The notes beneath the pieces are model-generated. The model searched no databases, was not told the origin of the DNA, and saw nothing but the letters and a program-made list of their open reading frames with translations. Source: Mytilus californianus (lineage: Eukaryota). Taken from it: 64,000 nt of DNA. Below are positions 16,761 through 59,096 of the stretch, piece by piece. A program made the position numbers and the translations under genes. Positions within the stretch are counted from its first letter, which is position 1. Every line of letters begins with the position of its first letter. The stretch lies in contig NW_026262667.1 in assembly GCF_021869535.1 (NCBI RefSeq), forward strand, positions 2,356,001 to 2,420,000. Direction: 5' to 3'.

Positions 16761-17965
16761 AATTAAATTACAGATTTTATATATTTGGTTTTGTCGAGTT
16801 TGGATAATGTGATTATTTTTAGGTGGTCCCACAATTCCTTCTCAAATTTGTATATAGTTTAGCCAAATACTAAATGTGCAATACTTTTGTGTTCAAAATC
16901 ATTGTCTACGCTAAGAATGCAATGATACTACGAGTAAGATTTAATGTTAGTTGTTTAAGTATATTTATTTTGCGTCTAGTCTAACTTTCCAAATAAGATA
17001 AACACATAAGATCACAAACATATCCGTAGCAATCTAAACAAACCTTTGGCAATTTTTAACATCAAAATGACTTTTCAGTCATTTATTAAAAAAAGCAACA
17101 CAATTTTACAATGTGTTTGTTATGAATAAACTAATAATAAAAATAAAACATTTTATTCGGTTGTTTTGCATGTTTGTGATGTATGTTTTCACAGTTTTTG
17201 TTGATTGATCCCAATTATCGTCACATCAACCAGTTATGTACGTTTGGGTTGCTCGCCCAATTATGTCAATATAACGGAACAATAAACAACTGTCATACAA
17301 ATGGGAGGTTTAGCTAACTATAAAACCAGGTTTAACTCACCATTTTCTTCGAGAAATGCCTGTACTAAATTAGGAATATGACAGTTGTTTCCCATTCAAT
17401 ATAGTCTAACGTATGCATTTGTCATCAGGTTTTATTGACTTCCCGATTTCTGAATTTACCTTAGATTTAGGTATTTTTGTTAATACATTTTTTTTCAAAA
17501 GCAATAGAATACACGTTGTTATAATAAATATTAGACGCATCAGTGTCGTTATTATAACAAACATTGTACAATGTTGGGATATATCCATATGGCGGATAAT
17601 GAAAATAATCAATTGATAACTACGGAATAAAATCTATATATTACGGATGTTTCGGCATGCAACAAACTTTACCTATATTATAAAGTTTTCTTTTAAATTG
17701 TGAACAGTGTACAGTAAACTTGAAACTTTTTGCCTATTATATATAAAAAATAAGCATAATTAATTTTCAGTTGAAACAAAAAAAATAATCTTTGTATTCA
17801 TGGTATTACGTGTATGTAGTGAACTAAAAAGACATAACCTCTTTGGTTGATGTTCATTCATTATAGGCTTATATCAGATCTAGACATACACAACTATTTT
17901 CTAAAGTAAACAGTTTTATCATGAAGACATACAAAAGTGCAGCGCAGAATTTGACTCCGTTGTCA

Positions 17966-18416
17966 TTAATTTATTGCGCGAATGATTTCCTGCATAGGTG
18001 TAACCAGTGATAATCCTGACTTCGAACAGAAGGCAATTGCCATACCGACACATCCAGATTTCTCTTTCGTGTCTCCAGTGATGTAAATACATGTTCCTGA
18101 ATCCCCCAGTTGGAGTGGAATGTTCATAACCATTTGATTGTACATTGTAAAAATCCGCTTCTCGGTCAGAGTCCGACTTGTAGTTGCATGTGAGCAGGTT
18201 GAGTGATTAATAGTGGATGAAAGGTTAACCCATTTGCATGACCAATAAACTGACCATTATCTTGAAAACATACGTCGGTATGTGTTGGTCGCTGGAATGT
18301 CACTTTATCGTCTATTTTTGTAGATGCACCTTGAGCAACAATCGGCACAGTTTCTCTGGTACAACACAATTTCATATGATCGCAGGAATGCCGATTCACG
18401 AATTCTGAAGTTAGTT
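17966..18416 (-). CDS. Last exon of the protease gene, containing the catalytic Ser; broken by a frameshift or a short intron
   Basis: Acceptor CTTTCAG at 18417. Frame A gives VAQGAST; an overlapping frame gives TMYNQMVMNNSTPTGDSGTCIYI...GCVGMAIAF...LVTPMQEIIRAIN*, with the stop at 17966-17968. Confidence 0.75.
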
Positions 18417-19844
18417 CTGAAAGATAAGCATAAAAAACATTATTTTGTCTCATTTTCTCATTGTTGAAGGCTTTAAAGTATTGAAATAGATATTTGTATT
18501 TAGGTGTTTGCTGGATGATTGTCCCATGAGTGATCATACTACTTCCATTTTTATTGACACGATACCCTTTCTAAGTTGATATTGAAAGAACGAAAATGAA
18601 CAAAAAAGGAGTCGTTAAATTGACAGCAAAACAGTTTTTTGGTTTATTTTGAAAGCGCTTTCAGATTTGTTTAACCTGACACGTGCTGTGTCTATTTTCC
18701 AATCTCTCAAAGCTGTAAACCCTTAATGGCAATAGCAAAAATTGGCAATTTCGATTTTGACCTCCATATTTGTCATAAAAAACAACATTGTACCACATGA
18801 AAATCTTTGATTGAACGATCTACATGTTATTTCTGAGAAATGACATAACACGCACACGCCAATTTTTAATCTATCAGTAATCCTGAATCGTAAACATAAA
18901 ATTCGTCAATATCGATATTGATCTTCTCTTTGTCATCAGAAAGATCATATCAAAATCTTAAAAGTGTTTGTGGAACGGATTATAAATGTTTGCACAAATG
19001 CCAACAGCATGCCATTTTCCATCTATCAAGGACCAGCTATCAACTCCTAAACAGTAAAAGTGAAAATCATATCTAACTTGACTTCCATTTTGTTATCAGT
19101 AACAATATATCAAAATTTAAAAAGCATTTATGGAACAATTCATAAGCTAATTTGATATATCTTTCTTATGAAAGAGAAAGGCGGAAGATACTTAAGGGGT
19201 ATTCAATCTCATAAGTCGATTACAAACTGACAACGTCATGACAAAAAAATAACAAACGGCCTAAACACACACAATAGTATACCAAACACAAAATAAAATC
19301 TTAAGACTGAGCAACACGAACCCTACTGAAAACTGGCGGTCATCAGTTAAATGGAATCACTAAACAGCATTGGTATTGCTAGAAGGATATCGGGTGACCA
19401 TATGTTTATTCTTCAGTTCATTGTGTAGCATCACCTTCGGATACAGGTACCCCCGAAGCAAAGAAACAATGATAACAAAAGTAGCTATTCTAATCCCCGC
19501 ACAATAAACAACTATTCGCTGCTATTCGTCGTACAACTTTCTTTCTTAACATGAATTTCTCTGTGTAAACGATAGTTTGATTTTGTCAGTTATTATCGAC
19601 TTTCCATTTTTGAATTTGTCTTGGAGTTCGGTAAATTTGTTATACTTTTTTTCTTTTCTAACATTTGAGAAGTTACTCCTCAGAAAACAATATTAAAGAA
19701 CAAAAAGAAACAAAAATTGCCAAATAAACTTTTGTTAGAAATAAAGGTTAAGCATCAATATGTGAACAATGGTATACATGGGGGTAATACTATTAGAAAT
19801 CTTTTACTTAAGACCATAAAATAGATTTGGTAAAAATAGTATAC

Positions 19845-21023
19845 TTAAGCTGCTGGCTGGATGAGGAGCCCCATTGATGTCTCGTACAATATCGTTAGGA
19901 TCGATGAAAAAGTCAGACGGTTTTATTATGACTAAGCCTGCATCCACACTGGTTTTGTTAGGATCATCATGGTTGAAAACTCCACGGAAAACGTCACCAC
20001 AATGACTTTTACTTTTCTGACGATCCAAAAAAACTTTAATTTCCTCGTCATAACTAGGGTCATCTTTAGGAGCTAACAAGGTTGGAAGGCTGTATAACAC
20101 ATGGGCACATGTCAAAAAGCATTTAAACTTTCCTGCAATTCGATAAAAACCTCCCAAAGTTCCACACATAGTATCAGTGCCTATTTTATCTCCTATTCGT
20201 AACGGGGTTGAGGCCAAATAGCTATGGCCTTGCAAAACATCTGTTAGTTGGCCTTTGATGATCGATGGAAAATGGTTTTCACCGAGAGGAATGTACCCTT
20301 TTCTTTTACAAAATAGTTGAATGCAAAATGTTTGTGAAACTTTATGATCAAAACCATAATTTGTAGACTTCATGAATGAAGGACAAATCAAAGATAGATT
20401 TCTGTGTTGTTCAAACATTGTTGATGCAATTTGACCATCGATTTGATTCATTAGTAGACTGCTCGAAGAAGACCCATTATTGTCTGATATTTTTGACATA
20501 ATATCTTTCATTTCGTCAGTCGCTGCATTTCCTGTTTTACAAACGTTATCACAGCTGAATAATTTTATATCAAAATAAAAAAATGCAGCCGGCATACAAG
20601 AACGTTCATTTCCTTTCCATTCAATAGCTATTATCTTTTTTCCTGTAAGCAAACATACTTTTTTCGTACATGCATTGTGACATTCGCACTTATATGCTGG
20701 ATATATGTCGATGGCATTGTCATCCAATAACTTTTTATATTTCTTGTAGAATTGTCTTGTAACTTTCCAAGCCAAGGTTTTAATTGTTCCATTATTTCCA
20801 ACTTCAAAAGATTTAGACAATACTTGAACGATACATTCGTCTTCATACTGAAAGTGAGACAATAACCAACGGCAAACAAATGATAATTTGTTCTCAACAG
20901 CAGTAAGCAGTATTTCTTTGAATAAAAGTGATTCATGATGAGCGTTCATTAATGAGATAATTATCAAATACTCTGATTTCATTTTCCACTCAATTGTTAT
21001 TTCATCTAATTTATAAAACAACT
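19845..21023 (-). CDS. Main exon of a NAL1-like trypsin-fold (PA clan) serine protease with an N-terminal helical region
   Basis: An intact 405-codon ORF in 70% AT DNA, with acceptor TTTTTCAG at 21024. Motifs are CIQLFCKRKGYIPLGENHFP...TDVLQG, GTLGGF, FLTCAHV (His) and SVDAGLV (Asp). The probable donor is A|GTATAC at 19844. Confidence 0.85.
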
Positions 21024-21274
21024 CTGAAAAACAAAGTATATCATTACCAGATTACATTATTCATATGTATGTAAATTAATACATTTGTAGTAAAAGTCGA
21101 TGAGACTGCAACCTCACAACCCGGCAACAATATCATCAAAAGATATCTAGAGGCCAAAAAATCGTCTTTTAGTAATCGAAAATTTTCTATAAAATATGTC
21201 ATGCTCTTAATCTATCGCGTCTGCAAATCATCCAAATAACAAAACATTAAGACTGATGTACTAAATTAAATTAC

Positions 21275-21314
21275 CTTCGATGAGATTTGAGACATGGTGG
21301 CCACACAAACTCAT
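21275..21314 (-). CDS. Candidate first coding exon of the NAL1-like protease gene (MSLCGHHVSNLIE)
   Basis: An ATG with an upstream in-frame stop, 40 nt long, with a phase-1 donor G|GTAATT. This matches the phase-1 acceptor at 21023. Confidence 0.45.
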
Positions 21315-23515
21315 GTAGCACAGTTTTTAAATTTCACTCCCATTGTTATCTTAGTCGGTAAACAAAATAAAACGTACATACATGTTTTTTCCTTAAGAAT
21401 TAGTACGGGAAAAGGAGTACACTAAGTGAGATAGCAATGACAATAATGCAAATATCTGTTTAAACCTTGAATACATTAATGGAATAATCCGTATATTGCT
21501 TTCATATCAATATTTCATATTTTGTTTATTAGATATAAACGGAAGTGTTCCTGGAATTGTCCCTAAAATTCTAGTATCTGCATATCCTGAATGTTTATTA
21601 AATGCTGAATTATACTGAGATATGATAAATTTGATAGGTAACCAGATGACATAGCCATCAACTCGTAGTCGAGTGTTTTTTTAAGAAATGCACGTATTTT
21701 CGATTAAACCACTAAGAACCCTTGTTGGTAATATTCCTCCTAACCTGATTTATATCCTGATAAAAACGTAGTATCAGCCGGTAGATATGAGGTGGTTAAT
21801 TCTATGTATAGTTCAGATTAAAAAAAAAGCCGTTTATTATCATTTTGCGTGTTCCAAATGTGTCAAATGTGCATTTGTAATGGATGACTAAATGCGTCCA
21901 GGATAGTAACTTCTATATGGGTCATCTAAAAATGTCAAGGTAAGTACATGAAAATGCAAATTTTGATATATTGAACATTTTTTCTATTCAAAATTTACTG
22001 TTTTCACTATATAAGCAGAAAATGGTTGAAAAATATAATTCAAGGGCCGTAACTCCTATATCAGTGATTTTGACAATATTTTCATTTTTATTTCCGATTG
22101 TTGATAACTTCACTTTCAGTGTAAATATTTGCATATATAATTCGGACAAGAACAAAAAATAATTGATTCAGTAGGTAGGTTTTGCAAGGTGTACCAGCCC
22201 TGATGAAAGGTGGGAAATTTAACATTCAGAGAGCGTGTCAGTCTCCATACATGAGTCATCGGATTTTGTGACTTTTAGTACATCGGGGATATTTTTATTT
22301 GGAATGACTCAAATGTAAAATATCTTTCTGAAGACTGACTGACCCTTTTCCACTTTTGGATTTGTTCCAACTGAAACATCTTCCGAATTCAGCACTAACA
22401 GAGTTTTGTGGTTATGATAGGCAAGTAAAAACATTCTATTCCTTAGGAGAAAATTCGTATATGACCATTTGGTGTCCAATGTCATGAGAGAAAGGTTCCC
22501 ACGGTTTGTCATAAACGATGAAAATAATGATGTTCGATAAAAATTATAATTACATTAGATAAAACAAAAACTAAACATATAAAGGGGAATAAGTTCTTTG
22601 CGTCTTGTGATGAAAAATAAATATAAGGGGTAAGGGGCATTAACTACGATTTAGACAAAAAAATTATAGTGAGATATATATAAATATATTGATAATGAAT
22701 GCTATTACTAACTTTTGTTTCAGTGTTGTAAAAAATAAACTGAAAAACCTCACTGTTGTATAGAGTTATCTTGCAAGACAATAATTCGACCTCGTTTGAG
22801 TTCGTATGCATGCATTTGAAAACAAAATTGACGCTTAGTTGGAGAAAGTTTGCGCTTGTCAGTCGTGATTTATTATTTTTTTTATTTGGCCTTGATCACA
22901 GTTTTGATTCGAGCGCCACCGAGGAGTGTAATATAGACGGAATAACAAATTTTAAGCTTGGTTTGATGAGTTTTATTTGTTTGTATCAAACAAAATTATG
23001 AAAACTGACATTATTCTGCTGCTCGTTCTTACATTCTTTTGGATTGATGTTTACCTGTCTGTTCATATTTATAATTTTAACAAAGTCATTTAATAGTCGA
23101 CATTTTTTTTATATAATTTTAACAAAGTCATTCAATAGAAGACATTTTTCTTGGGTCATATCGAAGGGGAATTAGATAACTTTCAGTCGGGAATACACAT
23201 AAATGTTGATACTTTATAATTGAAGTACTGAATTAGGTTTAGTAAATATATATAATCAAATTTGAGAGTTTGAATCAATTTGGTGGGTACGGTATTGGTA
23301 GCCTATATCCCTTTAACAATGTATGTATACAAAACATTTATAAGCATTTAACGATATAAATACACTTGCCGTGAACAGTTACGTTAGAAGTGGAATTTTG
23401 GACTTTTGGACCATTGCAAAGTTTCATATGTAGTCTAACGTCAACAAAACACAGTATATTGATTCCATTACAATTTAAATCTCAAATAGCAAAATTATCT
23501 GTAACAAAATTTTGA

Positions 23516-24096
23516 AAAGGAGTAGGGGCATTAAGGCTCGGTTTTGGCCCAAGAAAATAAAATGTTTGACAACTACACCAAATTGGCACATTATGTTAGG
23601 AAATGCATAGAGTCAAGAAATATAAATGAAAACATAAGATTTTTTATCTGATGACGTCACAATTACGTTATGATATGTATCGTTTTCGTGAAAATGACGA
23701 AAAATACAGAATTTAAGCAGTTTTTCATCGTTATTGCCATTGTGGAAACATCATGCGCAACTAAGAAACAACAAAATAATTTAAGAGAAGCTTTTTCATA
23801 ACTATTGACATAATCTCACCAAATATAAAGTTGTTTCTTGGATGCGCACATACTTTGCCAATCTCAAATATACTTAAAATTTGATGAAAAACAAGGAAAA
23901 TCAAGAAATTTTACAAAATACAAGAATTTCGTCATGGTTTGTTACCATGGTTACTCGATCAATGTCAAATTTGTTTTTATTTTCTGAATACCTCGTACCT
24001 TAGTCTAGTTAGGACAAATTTAAGAATATGTAGGATAACTTTTAAATTTGCAGTAATATTTGGGCCAAATAATGGCCTTATTGCCCCTACTCCTTT
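23516..24096. mobile_element. MITE of ~580 bp with ~37-bp terminal inverted repeats
   Basis: The left end AAAGGAGTAGGGGCATTAAGGCTCGGTTTTGGCCCAA compares with the right-end reverse complement AAAGGAGTAGGGGCAATAAGGCCATTATTTGGCCCAA. No intact target-site duplication is visible. Confidence 0.8.
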
Positions 24097-25639
24097 GAGA
24101 CAAAAGAATCTTAGTTGTACAAAGCAGTTTACAAAATGTGGTTTATATAGTTGCTTACCTTTTACGTCAATTGGTCTCTGATGGAAAGCTGTGTCATTGG
24201 TAATTCTTTATATTTTTTATATTTTTTGGTTTTTATAGTTATGACTGTGGTTTGGATTGTTACAACCGTTTCAAATAAGTTGCATACATTTGCGTTGTCT
24301 TTTTTTTTTTTTTTTGGAGATTTCTGGGTTCGAGAGCTCGGAACCGCGACTCTTCACGGATGCAACGACAAAATTGATGGTGTAGATAATTTGTCAAGTT
24401 CCAGGTGAAGTGATCTCAATATATTAAATTTAGTTACAACTCTTTTCGATCTTATAAGGGTCACGGTCGTCGAAAATATGCACCACCTGCAGATAACATT
24501 ATGTCTATGGATGGATTTTTATCTTAGGTTTTAAAACTTTTGGGAATTCAAATAGAACAAATTTGTTTTCCATACCATTGGCAAAGCTCATCTAACTATT
24601 TCAAGAATTGCAAAACACTTCCAATATTAGTTTAAATTTTGTAAAGTACTATGGGTATTGTTATCCACAGACGTTTTGAACATGTGACAAATATCTCCAA
24701 GAATGAAGAATTTTTTTGTACCATCTGTACTTTACGTAGTTTTTTAAAACATATGTTTCGCTAATAAGAGTTTCAATACTATCAATATTAGCACATTTTC
24801 ATTAAAGCTGTGCAGAACACAAAACCTGGTTACTTAATCTGTCATTTCATTTGCCTACACAAGACCTATAGCGACCAATATTTTAAACCATTAGGTTACA
24901 AGAGAGACCTTTACATTCGTTTGTAAAATCCAAAACCTCTCTATTATTCTTTTTTTTATCGTCCCAATAATTCCTTTAAAAGTTTGCATTGTAAACAATG
25001 AACATCTTGCATAATTGTTAGCCAATTGCCAGAAATATCGAATTCCTCTGCCTTTCAACTGCAACTTCAGGTTACACATTGATGTAGTTGAAGACAATTA
25101 ATGCCAGAAAAAATGGTAAAGCGTAAGCCAGATGAAATAAAACTAGACACATCGTCTATACCGCTGTTCGGTCATGCTTACTTAAGACCATTAAAAAAAA
25201 CGGGCAAAGAGCACACGAATCTCTAACCCTTTCTATATGACCACGGTTAAGGATTTTTATCCTCTTTTTACGACAAATATGACGTTAATTCAGCAGAAAA
25301 AGCTCGAAACAATACTGTTTTTAATACAACAAAATCATTATTTGGAATATCAAACTCGATATTCGAAGTAAAACTCTGAATCTCACACATACCTATACAT
25401 CATCCACGAAAGAGGCGATTTTACAAAATTACAACCCGTCCTTCTCTCCTTTGGTTATAACTTACAGATGGGCGATGATAATTGTCGATCGTAATACTGG
25501 ATATCTAAACTTCCCAAAAATTCTGATAAAGAACAGTAAATAGCCGGGTCATCAAGATGTTCGACTTAAAATCTGTATAAAGTCATTAAATGTCATGATT
25601 AGTTATATTTAACAAGCCCTGTCAATCAGATGTAGATTC

Positions 25640-26510
25640 AAAAATAATCTCAGAATCTGCTGGAAAATCTTCAATCATATTCCTTACAATATTAAAGTAA
25701 TACTCTTATTCCCCATGCTCAATTGAAAGATCGACTAGTCTTCTCATTAAACAGAGCTCTTCTACAAAAATGGAAATCACAGATACAAAATTGATTGTGG
25801 TCATGACAAATATTTCCTTGTGAAGGAGCCCACTAATTCCATATACAAATAAACCGAAGATCATCAAAATACTGGACTTTTTGATTGACAGCCTGTTTGT
25901 TGAACGTGGTGAATTGATATTTTAGCAGACAGTCGGTTTTCCAATGGGTGATAGATGTGTACCACTACTGCCCGACTTGTTTTTGTACCCATATGCAGCA
26001 CAGTTCCCACAGAAACTTCTTTTCGACAAGAAGCACGAACAGCACGCAAAGTTCCTTAATTTCACTTTTAGATATATAGATGATGTCATGTCACTCAATC
26101 ACTCACATTTCGGTAAGTGCTTGCATCTAATGTATCCCAGTGAATATGAGATAACCAAAACTAGAAGATCTACTTCATATTTTGATATTTCCCTGGATAT
26201 AGACACAGATGGATGACTACAAAAAAGAATCTATGACAAACGGGATGATTTCTACTTTTAAATTATTAACTTCCAATTTCTTCAGTAGTATCTTACTCTC
26301 TATCCCATCGTATGTGTTTACATATCTGAATAGATACGTTACATTTGTGCGTATTCCCACTATACGGCCTACATTAATTTGGGTGTCTTCCTTACACAAA
26401 TACTTCTCCAAAAGAGACAGAATGATTGACATGGCAATGATTAACGGACTATCACAAATTTAACAAGATGTCTTATTCCTGATTGTGACATGTACTAAGA
26501 ACTTGCTTAA
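25640..26510 (+). mobile_element. Highly decayed Naiad RT fragment
   Basis: PMGDRCVPLLPDLFL, LNFTFRYIDDVMSLN, SYFDISLDID and YDKRDDF remnants. Confidence 0.8.
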
Positions 26511-26830
26511 AAAGTATGGCATCCTCGAGTTTCGTCTTTGTAATATTAATGGATCAGTATTTCAGCATAAAGATTCAAACTATGTTCTTTTCAATTCAGT
26601 AAAAGTAATCGTACGCAAATACATAATTTTGGTTGTGATTTAAAAAACAAAGTTTTATGAACGTATCGTTATAAAGGATTAGAATAAAACATGCATGGCA
26701 AAAGTGTTTACCTCAGAACAAAGGACGCAATTTGTTAGTTGAAATAAGAAAGGTTAAGATCAAATTGATTTTATAGATCTGATTATCCGTAAGTGTTTTA
26801 TGTGTAACGAAACAGTACACAACTACTTAC

Positions 26831-26959
26831 CATTTATGGCCACCTTGTCATCGTTAACTGTTCTTTGTAAGTAGTCCTTGTAATTATTTATAAGTCGTTT
26901 ATCCACAAAACAGTGCAAATGAGTACCATCACAAATTAAATCAACTGTTGCAAGATCTC
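26831..26959 (-). CDS. Candidate orphan 129-nt symmetric phase-1 exon (DLATVDLICDGTHLHCFVDKRLINNYKDYLQRTVNDDKVAIN)
   Basis: Acceptor TTTATTGTAG, donor G|GTAAGT and an open frame between them. No recognisable domain. Confidence 0.3.
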
Positions 26960-27541
26960 CTACAATAAATATGAAGTTTATACACGAAAACAAAGAAGTC
27001 TTCAAATGAATAAAATCATTATATAATAATAATACATTTCAAAAGAATTTATTATAAACTATTATTTTCATGTAATGAAAAGCCATTCATGATGTTGTAC
27101 AATGAAAAATAAGTTCATGCAATTCTTCAAAACATAATTTAGGCAAGATTGTATAAACAACTTACCAAAGTTATTTTCTCCCCCTTAAATGATCTGCTAC
27201 GATGTTTACATTGCAAAGAAGGTAAAATTGGTTTTCAAGACAACATTTGATTTATGATACATAGAACCACTAATTCGGGACTGGTCGCAAAGAACATACA
27301 AGAAAGCAATAAATATTTTGAACAAAATAATATCCTATGCATAGCTGTCACTTTGTCAAAAAGAAAAACATTTGGGAAATTTCGGTATCAAATGAAAGTG
27401 TAAGGACTTTGGATCACTGTAGAACCCTTGTTAAAAGCTTCTCTTGAATAATAAAATAAATATATGAAATTTTGATAGGAGGCTCAGATCAGAAGTATCT
27501 GTTTTTGTACTAACCAACTTCCGGGAATAAGTGAGCTCTAA

Positions 27542-28000
27542 TAGAGATTTCCAATAAAATGACATACGTACGTAACTCGACGTACGGACCTAATGGGACT
27601 GGTTATTGCCAACTATTGAATTTGATTTAATACGTCGCTCAAGTATTCCAAGACTTTTAAAATCACACACTAGAATTTTCGTCCATATAGAATAATTTTA
27701 TCATGACGAAAAATGATAGAAATCTTGCATTTTTATTTATCAAGTCGTTTTCCAGATTCCCACCTTTATTTTCACTGACATAAGATCACGTATAAACACA
27801 TGTATCCCATACCTTTTATACGTACGATTTCAGTTATCTTTCATAGTTTTGATTATGACAATTATTTTTCAATATACTTTGCAGATGAACGCCCCATTAT
27901 ACTTTTTTCTGTCTTTCCTAATCTATCTTTTTATTATATTTGTTGCGGGGAAAATATTTAGAAGGATATTTTTCTGACAATTTCAGAAATATTGAAACCA
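27542..28000. mobile_element. Inverted copy of the 11830-12338 transposon end
   Basis: Begins TAGAGATTTCCAATAAAATGACATACGTACGTAACTCGACG and aligns with the reverse complement of 11830-12338. Confidence 0.55.
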
Positions 28001-58942: not shown

Positions 58943-59096
58943 NNNNNNNNNNNNNNNNNNNNNNNNNNNNNNNNNNNNNNNNNNNNNNNNNNNNNNNNNN
59001 NNNNNNNNNNNNNNNNNNNNNNNNNNNNNNNNNNNNNNNNNNNNNNNNNNNNNNNNNNNNNNNNNNNNNNNNNNNNNNNNNNNNNNNNNNNNNNNN
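58943..59096. other. Assembly gap (N run)
   Basis: 154 consecutive N bases. Confidence 1.

Follow-up and report, generated by a model that had tools for sequence, protein, structure and literature searches.

A 64,000-nucleotide (nt) stretch of the Mytilus californianus genome (contig NW_026262667.1, positions 2,356,001 to 2,420,000; hereafter the window) carries a split open reading frame (ORF) with the motifs of a chymotrypsin-like serine protease. The locus raises the questions of whether it is a living gene, to which proteases its product is related, and what such a protein might do in a mussel. A preliminary description, made from the sequence alone, had proposed an intact, spliced gene for a cytosolic protease of the type represented by plant NARROW LEAF 1 (NAL1), preceded by a sensor-like N-terminus. 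That interpretation is partly supported by the present analysis, and its gene model and its claim of intactness fail. The reading that we favour, with a probability of roughly 0.6, is that this is a host gene for an intracellular, multi-module, NAL1-related serine protease acting as an immune or cell-death effector, and that the copy in the window is a null allele.

Gene structure, transcription and allelic state

The window is AT-rich eukaryotic DNA (G+C content, 29-41%) in which the longest ORF is followed by a runner-up of ~215 codons. All of the motifs reported previously, i.e. GTLGGF, LTCAHV, and VDAG in the longest ORF and GDSG in the next exon, were located on the minus strand (Table 1), and the window copy retains every catalytic and family-invariant residue.

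Public sequencing runs were compared with positions 17650-21350. The RNA run X8, which is transcriptome-sized and comes from another individual, provided a 3016-nt contig (depth, 22.8) with 6 differences from the window in ~1950 exonic bases (>99% identity). The 1428-nt intron is missing from this transcript, which means that the exon encoding the catalytic His and Asp residues is joined to the GDSG exon in RNA from this locus, as had been proposed. The same junction is present in Logan contig L001 (SRR13891812; 1684 nt), which encodes P0003 and aligns to positions 20743-19845 and then directly to 18416-17652. Past 21024, 30 letters of the X8 contig map uniquely, with one mismatch, to 26832-26861 in exon A, which reads in frame into exon B; the acceptor AG of exon A is provisionally placed at 26960-26961, without read evidence. 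At the other end, the 3' untranslated region (UTR) continues in the X8 contig for ~345 nt below 17650. The locus is a genuine mussel gene that is both spliced and transcribed, and it reaches at least 5.6 kilobases (kb) past the interval originally assigned to it (17966-21314). About 594 nt of the 5' end of the X8 contig were not located, and a start codon was not found.

Two candidate upstream exons were rejected. A noncoding exon ending at 27166 (TTTG/GTAAGT), considered as the predecessor of exon A, introduces an in-frame stop with no later ATG. The ATG exon at 21276-21314, previously regarded as the first exon with its start at 21314, is skipped by the main X8 contig, which joins exon B to the exon ending at 26831; only a low-depth, unspliced X8 contig covers it.

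The ORF had been described as intact, but a 1-nt deletion at 18171/18172 places a TGA ahead of GDSG. Where intact copies read GGACCGCTGACC (L001 alignment), the window reads GGA-CTCTGA. Three-frame translation of exon C showed that the frame entering from exon B meets this TGA at 18166-18168 and that GDSG lies in another frame. The premature stop falls 20 codons ahead of the GDSG serine, so that the second barrel is truncated and the catalytic Ser is lost, and tblastn alignments of four of four full-length homologues break at 18171/18172. Contigs from the DNA run X1, which probably represents the sequenced individual, are identical to the window over 3.7 kb, including the deletion, with the reservation that contigs show presence and not absence and that X1 may be heterozygous. 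The extra base is present in the X8 RNA and in an independent DNA run, X3. Because the deletion is shared by X1 DNA and the extra base is found in X8 and X3, the lesion represents a true allele rather than an error in the consensus sequence. The window allele is a null.

Different lesions were found in other copies: X3 has one T fewer in a run of seven T residues at 20577, which shifts the frame of exon B, and L001 has one base fewer near 20660, hence P0003 begins at an internal ATG. X8 is the only allele with an open frame throughout exons B and C. The ratio of nonsynonymous to synonymous substitution rates (dN/dS) for the window copy against L001 is 0.18 (dS, 0.11; 420 codons), which indicates that constraint acted until recently. 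The occurrence of intact and differently frameshifted alleles in other individuals thus points to a segregating functional/null polymorphism and not to an old pseudogene. As a separate observation, the locus, with its three independent 1-nt frameshifts, resembles a hotspot of segregating null alleles.

Table 1. Positions of the gene, its motifs, and associated features in the window
Feature	Positions	Strand	Remarks
Exon A	26831..26959	minus	upstream coding exon; phase-1; donor G/GTAAGT at 26830-26829
Intron A-B	21024..26830	minus	5.8 kb; GT..AG; X8 contig junction, dinucleotides checked
Decayed exon A duplicate	23368..23499	minus	inside the 5.8-kb intron; tblastn with P0012 and P0159, sequence and translation
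Exon B	19845..21023	minus	long open frame; ankyrin-like helices, Cys-rich linker, pre-protease alpha/beta domain, first beta-barrel with His and Asp
Longest ORF	19804-21021	minus	405 amino acids from TTG; 415 codons stop to stop
Ankyrin-like helical pairs	20746..20919	minus	KEILLTAVENKLSFVCRWLL... to ...TRQFY; BLASTP to P0067
Pre-protease alpha/beta domain	20227..20439	minus	one helix and ~5 strands; model residues 1-76, pLDDT 94-97
CIQLFCKRKGYIPLGENHFP motif	from 20325	minus	CIQLFC...TDV type; inside longest ORF
GTLGGF	20163-20146	minus	inside longest ORF
TCAHV	20112-20098	minus	inside longest ORF
Catalytic His codon	20101..20103	minus	in TCAHV
SVDAG	19950-19936	minus	inside longest ORF
Catalytic Asp codon	19942..19944	minus	in SVDAG
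Intron B-C	18417..19844	minus	1428 nt; GT..AG; spliced out in X8 contig and L001
High-copy repeat	~19014-19757		in the 1428-nt intron; summed contig depth to 6361 in DNA run X1 vs ~15 in exons
Exon C	17650..18416	minus	second beta-barrel, TAA stop, 3' UTR
Disabling lesion	18166..18172	minus	one base lost between 18172 and 18171, and adjacent substitution
GDSG	18095..18106	minus	in exon C; out of frame with exon B in window allele
Catalytic Ser codon	18098-18100	minus	in GDSG
TAA stop	17966-17968	minus	closes the GDSG frame

Predicted fold and sequence family of the protease

An AlphaFold2 model was obtained for residues 82-429 of P0003, which are 94% identical to the window protein, using a 131-sequence alignment (predicted local distance difference test (pLDDT) score, 88.3; predicted template modelling (pTM) score, 0.77); an earlier model from the shallow alignment A1 (pLDDT, 35) was discarded. 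As modelled, the catalytic core is a compact two-barrel chymotrypsin fold with a His-Asp-Ser triad. NAL1 chains occupy ranks 1-33 of the Foldseek search (E ~1e-9, ~400 aligned columns); next in the ranking, starting at E 7e-7, are Streptomyces griseus protease B (SGPB) and alpha-lytic protease. When the core (model residues 76-348) was superposed with VIA-align, Z scores of 19.8 for SGPB (178 amino acids, 2.3 Å), 16.4 for the NAL1 protease domain (206 amino acids, 3.5 Å), and 14-15 for HtrA/DegP were obtained.

Single-sequence Pfam and PDB searches with the window ORF gave no protease match. A 38-sequence profile of the domain, searched against the whole PDB, retrieved nine distinct NAL1 sequences (E 2.7e-5 to 1.5e-4), and the sole other match up to E 10 was a phycobiliprotein (E 1.6); S1A chains were absent from the PDB matches of the family profile. 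The 27-sequence profile A1, from which the C-terminal columns had been dropped, gave only chance PDZ matches in the PDB. Across the family, the triad is nearly invariant (His in 118/120 sequences, Asp in 117/119, and Ser in 54/55), as is GDSG (53-55 of 55).

Matches to named Pfam families were found in other members. The gathering score of Nal1_C (PF25819), 26.1 bits, is exceeded by the oyster member P0183 (28.6 bits) and approached by P0182 (25.3 bits), and 11 of the 131 family slices match this profile below threshold (best E 2.2e-5), whereas the window ORF, P0003, P0009, P0011, and P0028 do not match it at E<=1. By sequence, the Nal1_C link of the window protein is therefore transitive only, and the protein is not a member by the Pfam threshold. 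Twelve slices match Peptidase_S64 (PF08192; best E 1.5e-6, no bit score listed), for which P0163 scored 22.2 bits, over profile positions 579-682 only and short of the gathering score of 23.6. Sub-threshold matches were also obtained to Trypsin_2 (20/131 slices; best E 0.0048) and to Trypsin (PF00089; 5/131 slices; best E 0.0073), the latter with none for the window protein, in agreement with the earlier view that this is not a classical secreted S1A trypsin. The assignment to the NAL1 type stands for the protease domain, on the PDB profile and Foldseek results, but not at the level of the Nal1_C threshold, which the window protein misses. Bacterial homologues had also been invoked but found no support when 38 family members were scanned with NCBIfam and PADLOC, neither of which returned a meaningful match. 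Among characterized proteins, the nearest relatives of this divergent PA-clan serine protease are NAL1 and, more weakly, Ssy5.

The supposition of a lineage-expanded family was borne out. A word search found 35 relatives, those with names being 'uncharacterized' proteins of M. californianus, M. galloprovincialis, and M. coruscus, and an exhaustive profile search yielded 520 clusters (50% identity) at E<=1e-3, including 104 at E<=1e-30. The names sampled are all from bivalves (Mercenaria, Saccostrea, Mizuhopecten, Tegillarca, Ostrea, Argopecten, Sinanodonta, and Potamilus), and each named family member is a bivalve "uncharacterized protein". The protease domain thus defines a large, unnamed, bivalve-expanded family of at least 520 clusters.

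Comparison with known proteases places these similarities in context. Like the mussel protein as modelled, rice NAL1 (PDB 7Y77, 8PMG, and 8HAS, among others) has a chymotrypsin fold, a His-Asp-Ser triad, and a small alpha/beta domain before the protease; it is intracellular, as the mussel protein probably is, and the two share the local motifs GTLG..v....flT.HV and f..GDSGsl. Identity to the mussel protein is only ~16%, the window protein and its close homologues have no Nal1_C match, the N-terminal domain of NAL1 is unlike the ankyrin-like N-terminus of the mussel protein, and NAL1 is a plant protein whereas the present family is from animals (bivalves). NAL1 binds ATP and forms a hexameric cage, a trimer of dimers, that is required for activity (PMC12012508). 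SGPB and alpha-lytic protease (MEROPS S1E) give the best core superpositions (Z 19-19.8, 178-183 amino acids, 2.3-2.4 Å), with compact barrels and short loops in both, but they are secreted bacterial enzymes with pro-regions and have neither the pre-protease domain nor the ankyrin, DED, or STAND contexts. Ssy5 (S64) is, similarly, an intracellular signalling protease of chymotrypsin-like type with a large non-catalytic N-terminal part; it is a fungal protein, the family slices match it solely over that half of the second barrel which contains GDSG and never at the gathering score, and no match was obtained for the window protein. HtrA/DegP proteases also have a chymotrypsin fold and form oligomeric cages, but they carry PDZ domains, which are absent from the mussel protein, and showed a lower structural match and no sequence signal.

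Modules ahead of the protease and a possible role

Exon A encodes a short motif (..CDG....C..D.RL..) that is conserved in P0012, P0159, and P0174 and occurs in tandem, in two or three copies, in P0061 and P0052. The exon A duplicate at 23368-23499 has an in-frame TGA, a change of CDG to CNG, and a GC donor, and it is absent from the X8 transcript; it may be a lost second repeat, since P0052 and P0061 repeat the motif two to three times. In P0159 (521 amino acids), a long acidic, Ser-rich repeat region (..SSEDYEKV..) lies ahead of the exon A motif in the predicted protein, and exon C-like sequence follows that motif directly; either exon B is skipped there or the gene model is faulty.

The segment that follows exon A had been taken for degenerate ankyrin-like helices. 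It aligns to residues 163-238 of clam P0067 (GKTALHLA...CRWLL repeat; BLASTP E 4e-9), and residues 141-188 of P0067 match Pfam Ank_2/Ank at 23.4 bits, under the cut-off of 27.3. This alignment makes the ankyrin likeness a reasonable reading, but Pfam does not support it for the window protein, which, like 27 of its close relatives, has no Ank or Ank_2 match; a scan of 27 full ORFs likewise returned no consistent family for the N-terminal module. A reading of the 'RWLLSH' sequence as the Rx4-6H motif of a HEPN domain was rejected, as family members do not conserve the His and the region has no HEPN_DZIP3 match.

Between the Cys-rich linker and the protease lies an alpha/beta domain with the signature HxNLSLIxxS...CIxLxCxxKGxIPxGExxFP...TDV, in which K, F, and P are near-invariant across the family. 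NAL1 has a small alpha/beta ATP-binding domain in the corresponding place, ahead of its protease domain, with a basic loop, loop 2, and D166/V167 (PMC12012508). The ~400-column Foldseek alignments suggest that the two domains may correspond, but the rigid-body alignment spans model residues 76-348 only, and a sequence profile of the mussel domain retrieved no NAL1 chain. From exon A onward, the module order of the encoded protein is the CDG..C..D.RL motif, ankyrin-like helical pairs, the Cys-rich linker, the alpha/beta pre-protease domain, and the protease domain.

Longer paralogues place the same cassette behind other modules. An nSTAND3 NTPase precedes it in P0082, P0094, and P0101, two DED stretches in P0157 (Mercenaria mercenaria LOC123545053; 47 bits against a cut-off of 35.9), and HEPN_DZIP3 in P0135 and P0174; ankyrin (P0067), B-box, NHL, fn3, and coiled coils are also found in this position. 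Paralogues that carry an nSTAND3 NTPase, tandem DEDs, or HEPN_DZIP3 thus bear out the sensor-protease architecture that had been postulated. The DED-DED-protease layout of P0157 mirrors that of caspase-8, except that a serine protease stands where the caspase would be, which is an analogy of organization and not homology: the catalytic domain is a caspase in the one case and a PA-clan serine protease in the other, and the gene in the window has ankyrin-like helices only. Both this arrangement and that of the NTPase-containing members, which recalls STAND-effector architectures, are laid out as in death or immune proteases that are activated by proximity. Modules of these types have been described in sessile marine invertebrates, bivalves included, where death-fold and STAND architectures of immunity and apoptosis have undergone lineage-specific expansion and trypsin-like peptidases serve as effector domains (PMC8195603).

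An effector role is suggested by this association of the cassette with STAND NTPase, DED, HEPN_DZIP3, ankyrin, B-box, and NHL modules. The protein would then reside in the cytosol and serve as a proteolytic effector, with oligomerization as the means of its recruitment or activation in innate-immune or cell-death-type signalling. Its role would resemble that of a caspase, and self-assembly of the NAL1 kind is possible. Where the protein resides, whether it cleaves substrates, whether assembly activates it, and whether it serves immunity or cell death are all to be read as conditional in this sense. A broader proposal is that these proteins form an undescribed bivalve class, in which NAL1-related proteases are the output of STAND-NTPase/DED/HEPN signalosomes, a caspase counterpart activated as a cage, with loci kept as functional/null polymorphisms in an open pan-genome; we put this forward tentatively, as a possibility that is more doubtful than probable.

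Alternative explanations and wider relevance

Several points weigh against the favoured reading. Frameshifts were present in three of the four alleles seen, as would suit a gene that is dispensable or in decay, and the raw RNA run X21 contained only five partial reads with no splicing information, so expression can be very low. The rigid-body match of the core is slightly better to secreted bacterial S1E proteases than to NAL1, and the window protein reaches no Pfam threshold. A 101-sequence profile of the pre-protease domain gave only chance matches in the PDB, with no NAL1 chain among them, and the earlier claim that the CIQLFC...TDV motif is NAL1-like is not sustained. The window paralogue carries ankyrin-like helices only, with no DED or STAND module, and the N-terminus of the gene beyond exon A may hold a signal peptide or a further domain, so the earlier statement that there is no signal peptide is not sustained for this gene.

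The main rival is decay. The locus could be a recently dead duplicate whose transcripts are noise and which has no function in any individual, as the three independent 1-nt frameshifts among four haplotypes (window/X1, X3, and L001), the decayed exon A duplicate in the intron, and the near-absence of reads in X21 would lead one to expect. Yet the dN/dS of 0.18 was measured between two copies that are both frameshifted, one individual expresses an allele open across exons B and C at a contig depth of 22.8, and catalytic and family-invariant residues are all kept even in the broken copy; we regard a pseudogene as unlikely, while giving it more weight than the explanations that follow. The rigid-body ranking, headed by SGPB, S. 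fradiae protease, and alpha-lytic protease (Z 19-19.8, 2.3 Å), would also suit a secreted or digestive extracellular protease of S1E or alpha-lytic type whose likeness to NAL1 reflects merely the generic chymotrypsin fold. This is very improbable: the family profile matched no S1E or S1A chain to E 10, against nine NAL1 sequences, NAL1 heads the Foldseek ranking, paralogues fuse the cassette to cytosolic modules (DED, STAND NTPase, HEPN, ankyrin, and B-box), and the RefSeq homologues P0009 and P0011 begin within the ankyrin-like helix, with no leader.

A similarly small probability attaches to a catalytically silent scaffold, i.e. a pseudoprotease that only binds. In the subfamily of the window gene, the stretch equivalent to 'K.GA.SG.T.G', with which the second barrel of other members begins, is divergent, and a low-confidence insertion follows it in the model (residues 250-266), but His, Asp, Ser, and GDSG are almost invariant across the family, this subfamily included. 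Least probable of all is a protease of a transposon or endogenous virus, for which the high-copy repeat within the intron might be cited. The gene has at least three exons and GT-AG introns of 1.4 and 5.8 kb, two DNA runs cover its exons at single-copy depth with only the intronic repeat high, tblastn found one copy in the window, no transposase, reverse transcriptase, or integrase was matched in any family member scanned, and in its relatives the protease is joined to signalling domains of the host.

Work on NAL1 has until now treated it as a plant yield gene, and a literature search found no animal NAL1-like protease described in the papers that were searchable. Profile, fold, and the transitive Pfam match together link an unannotated bivalve family to NAL1 and S64, and the alignments A3 and A4 constitute a profile for annotating it. 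Because its cassette is repeatedly coupled to DED, STAND NTPase, and HEPN modules, the family offers a concrete candidate for a proteolytic effector other than a caspase in the innate immunity or cell death of molluscs. The independent null alleles, standing beside an expressed intact allele, are relevant to the study of presence/absence and loss-of-function variation among mussels. What follows for this window itself is less far-reaching: its gene model has to be corrected, and the copy is broken.

An Rfam scan of 17000-27600 gave no match, and the intron repeats are unremarkable. In X3, a 53-nt replacement was observed at 19248-19302, within the high-copy repeat of the 1428-nt intron. Elsewhere in the window, positions 58943-59096 are a run of 154 N, representing an assembly gap or a masked stretch.

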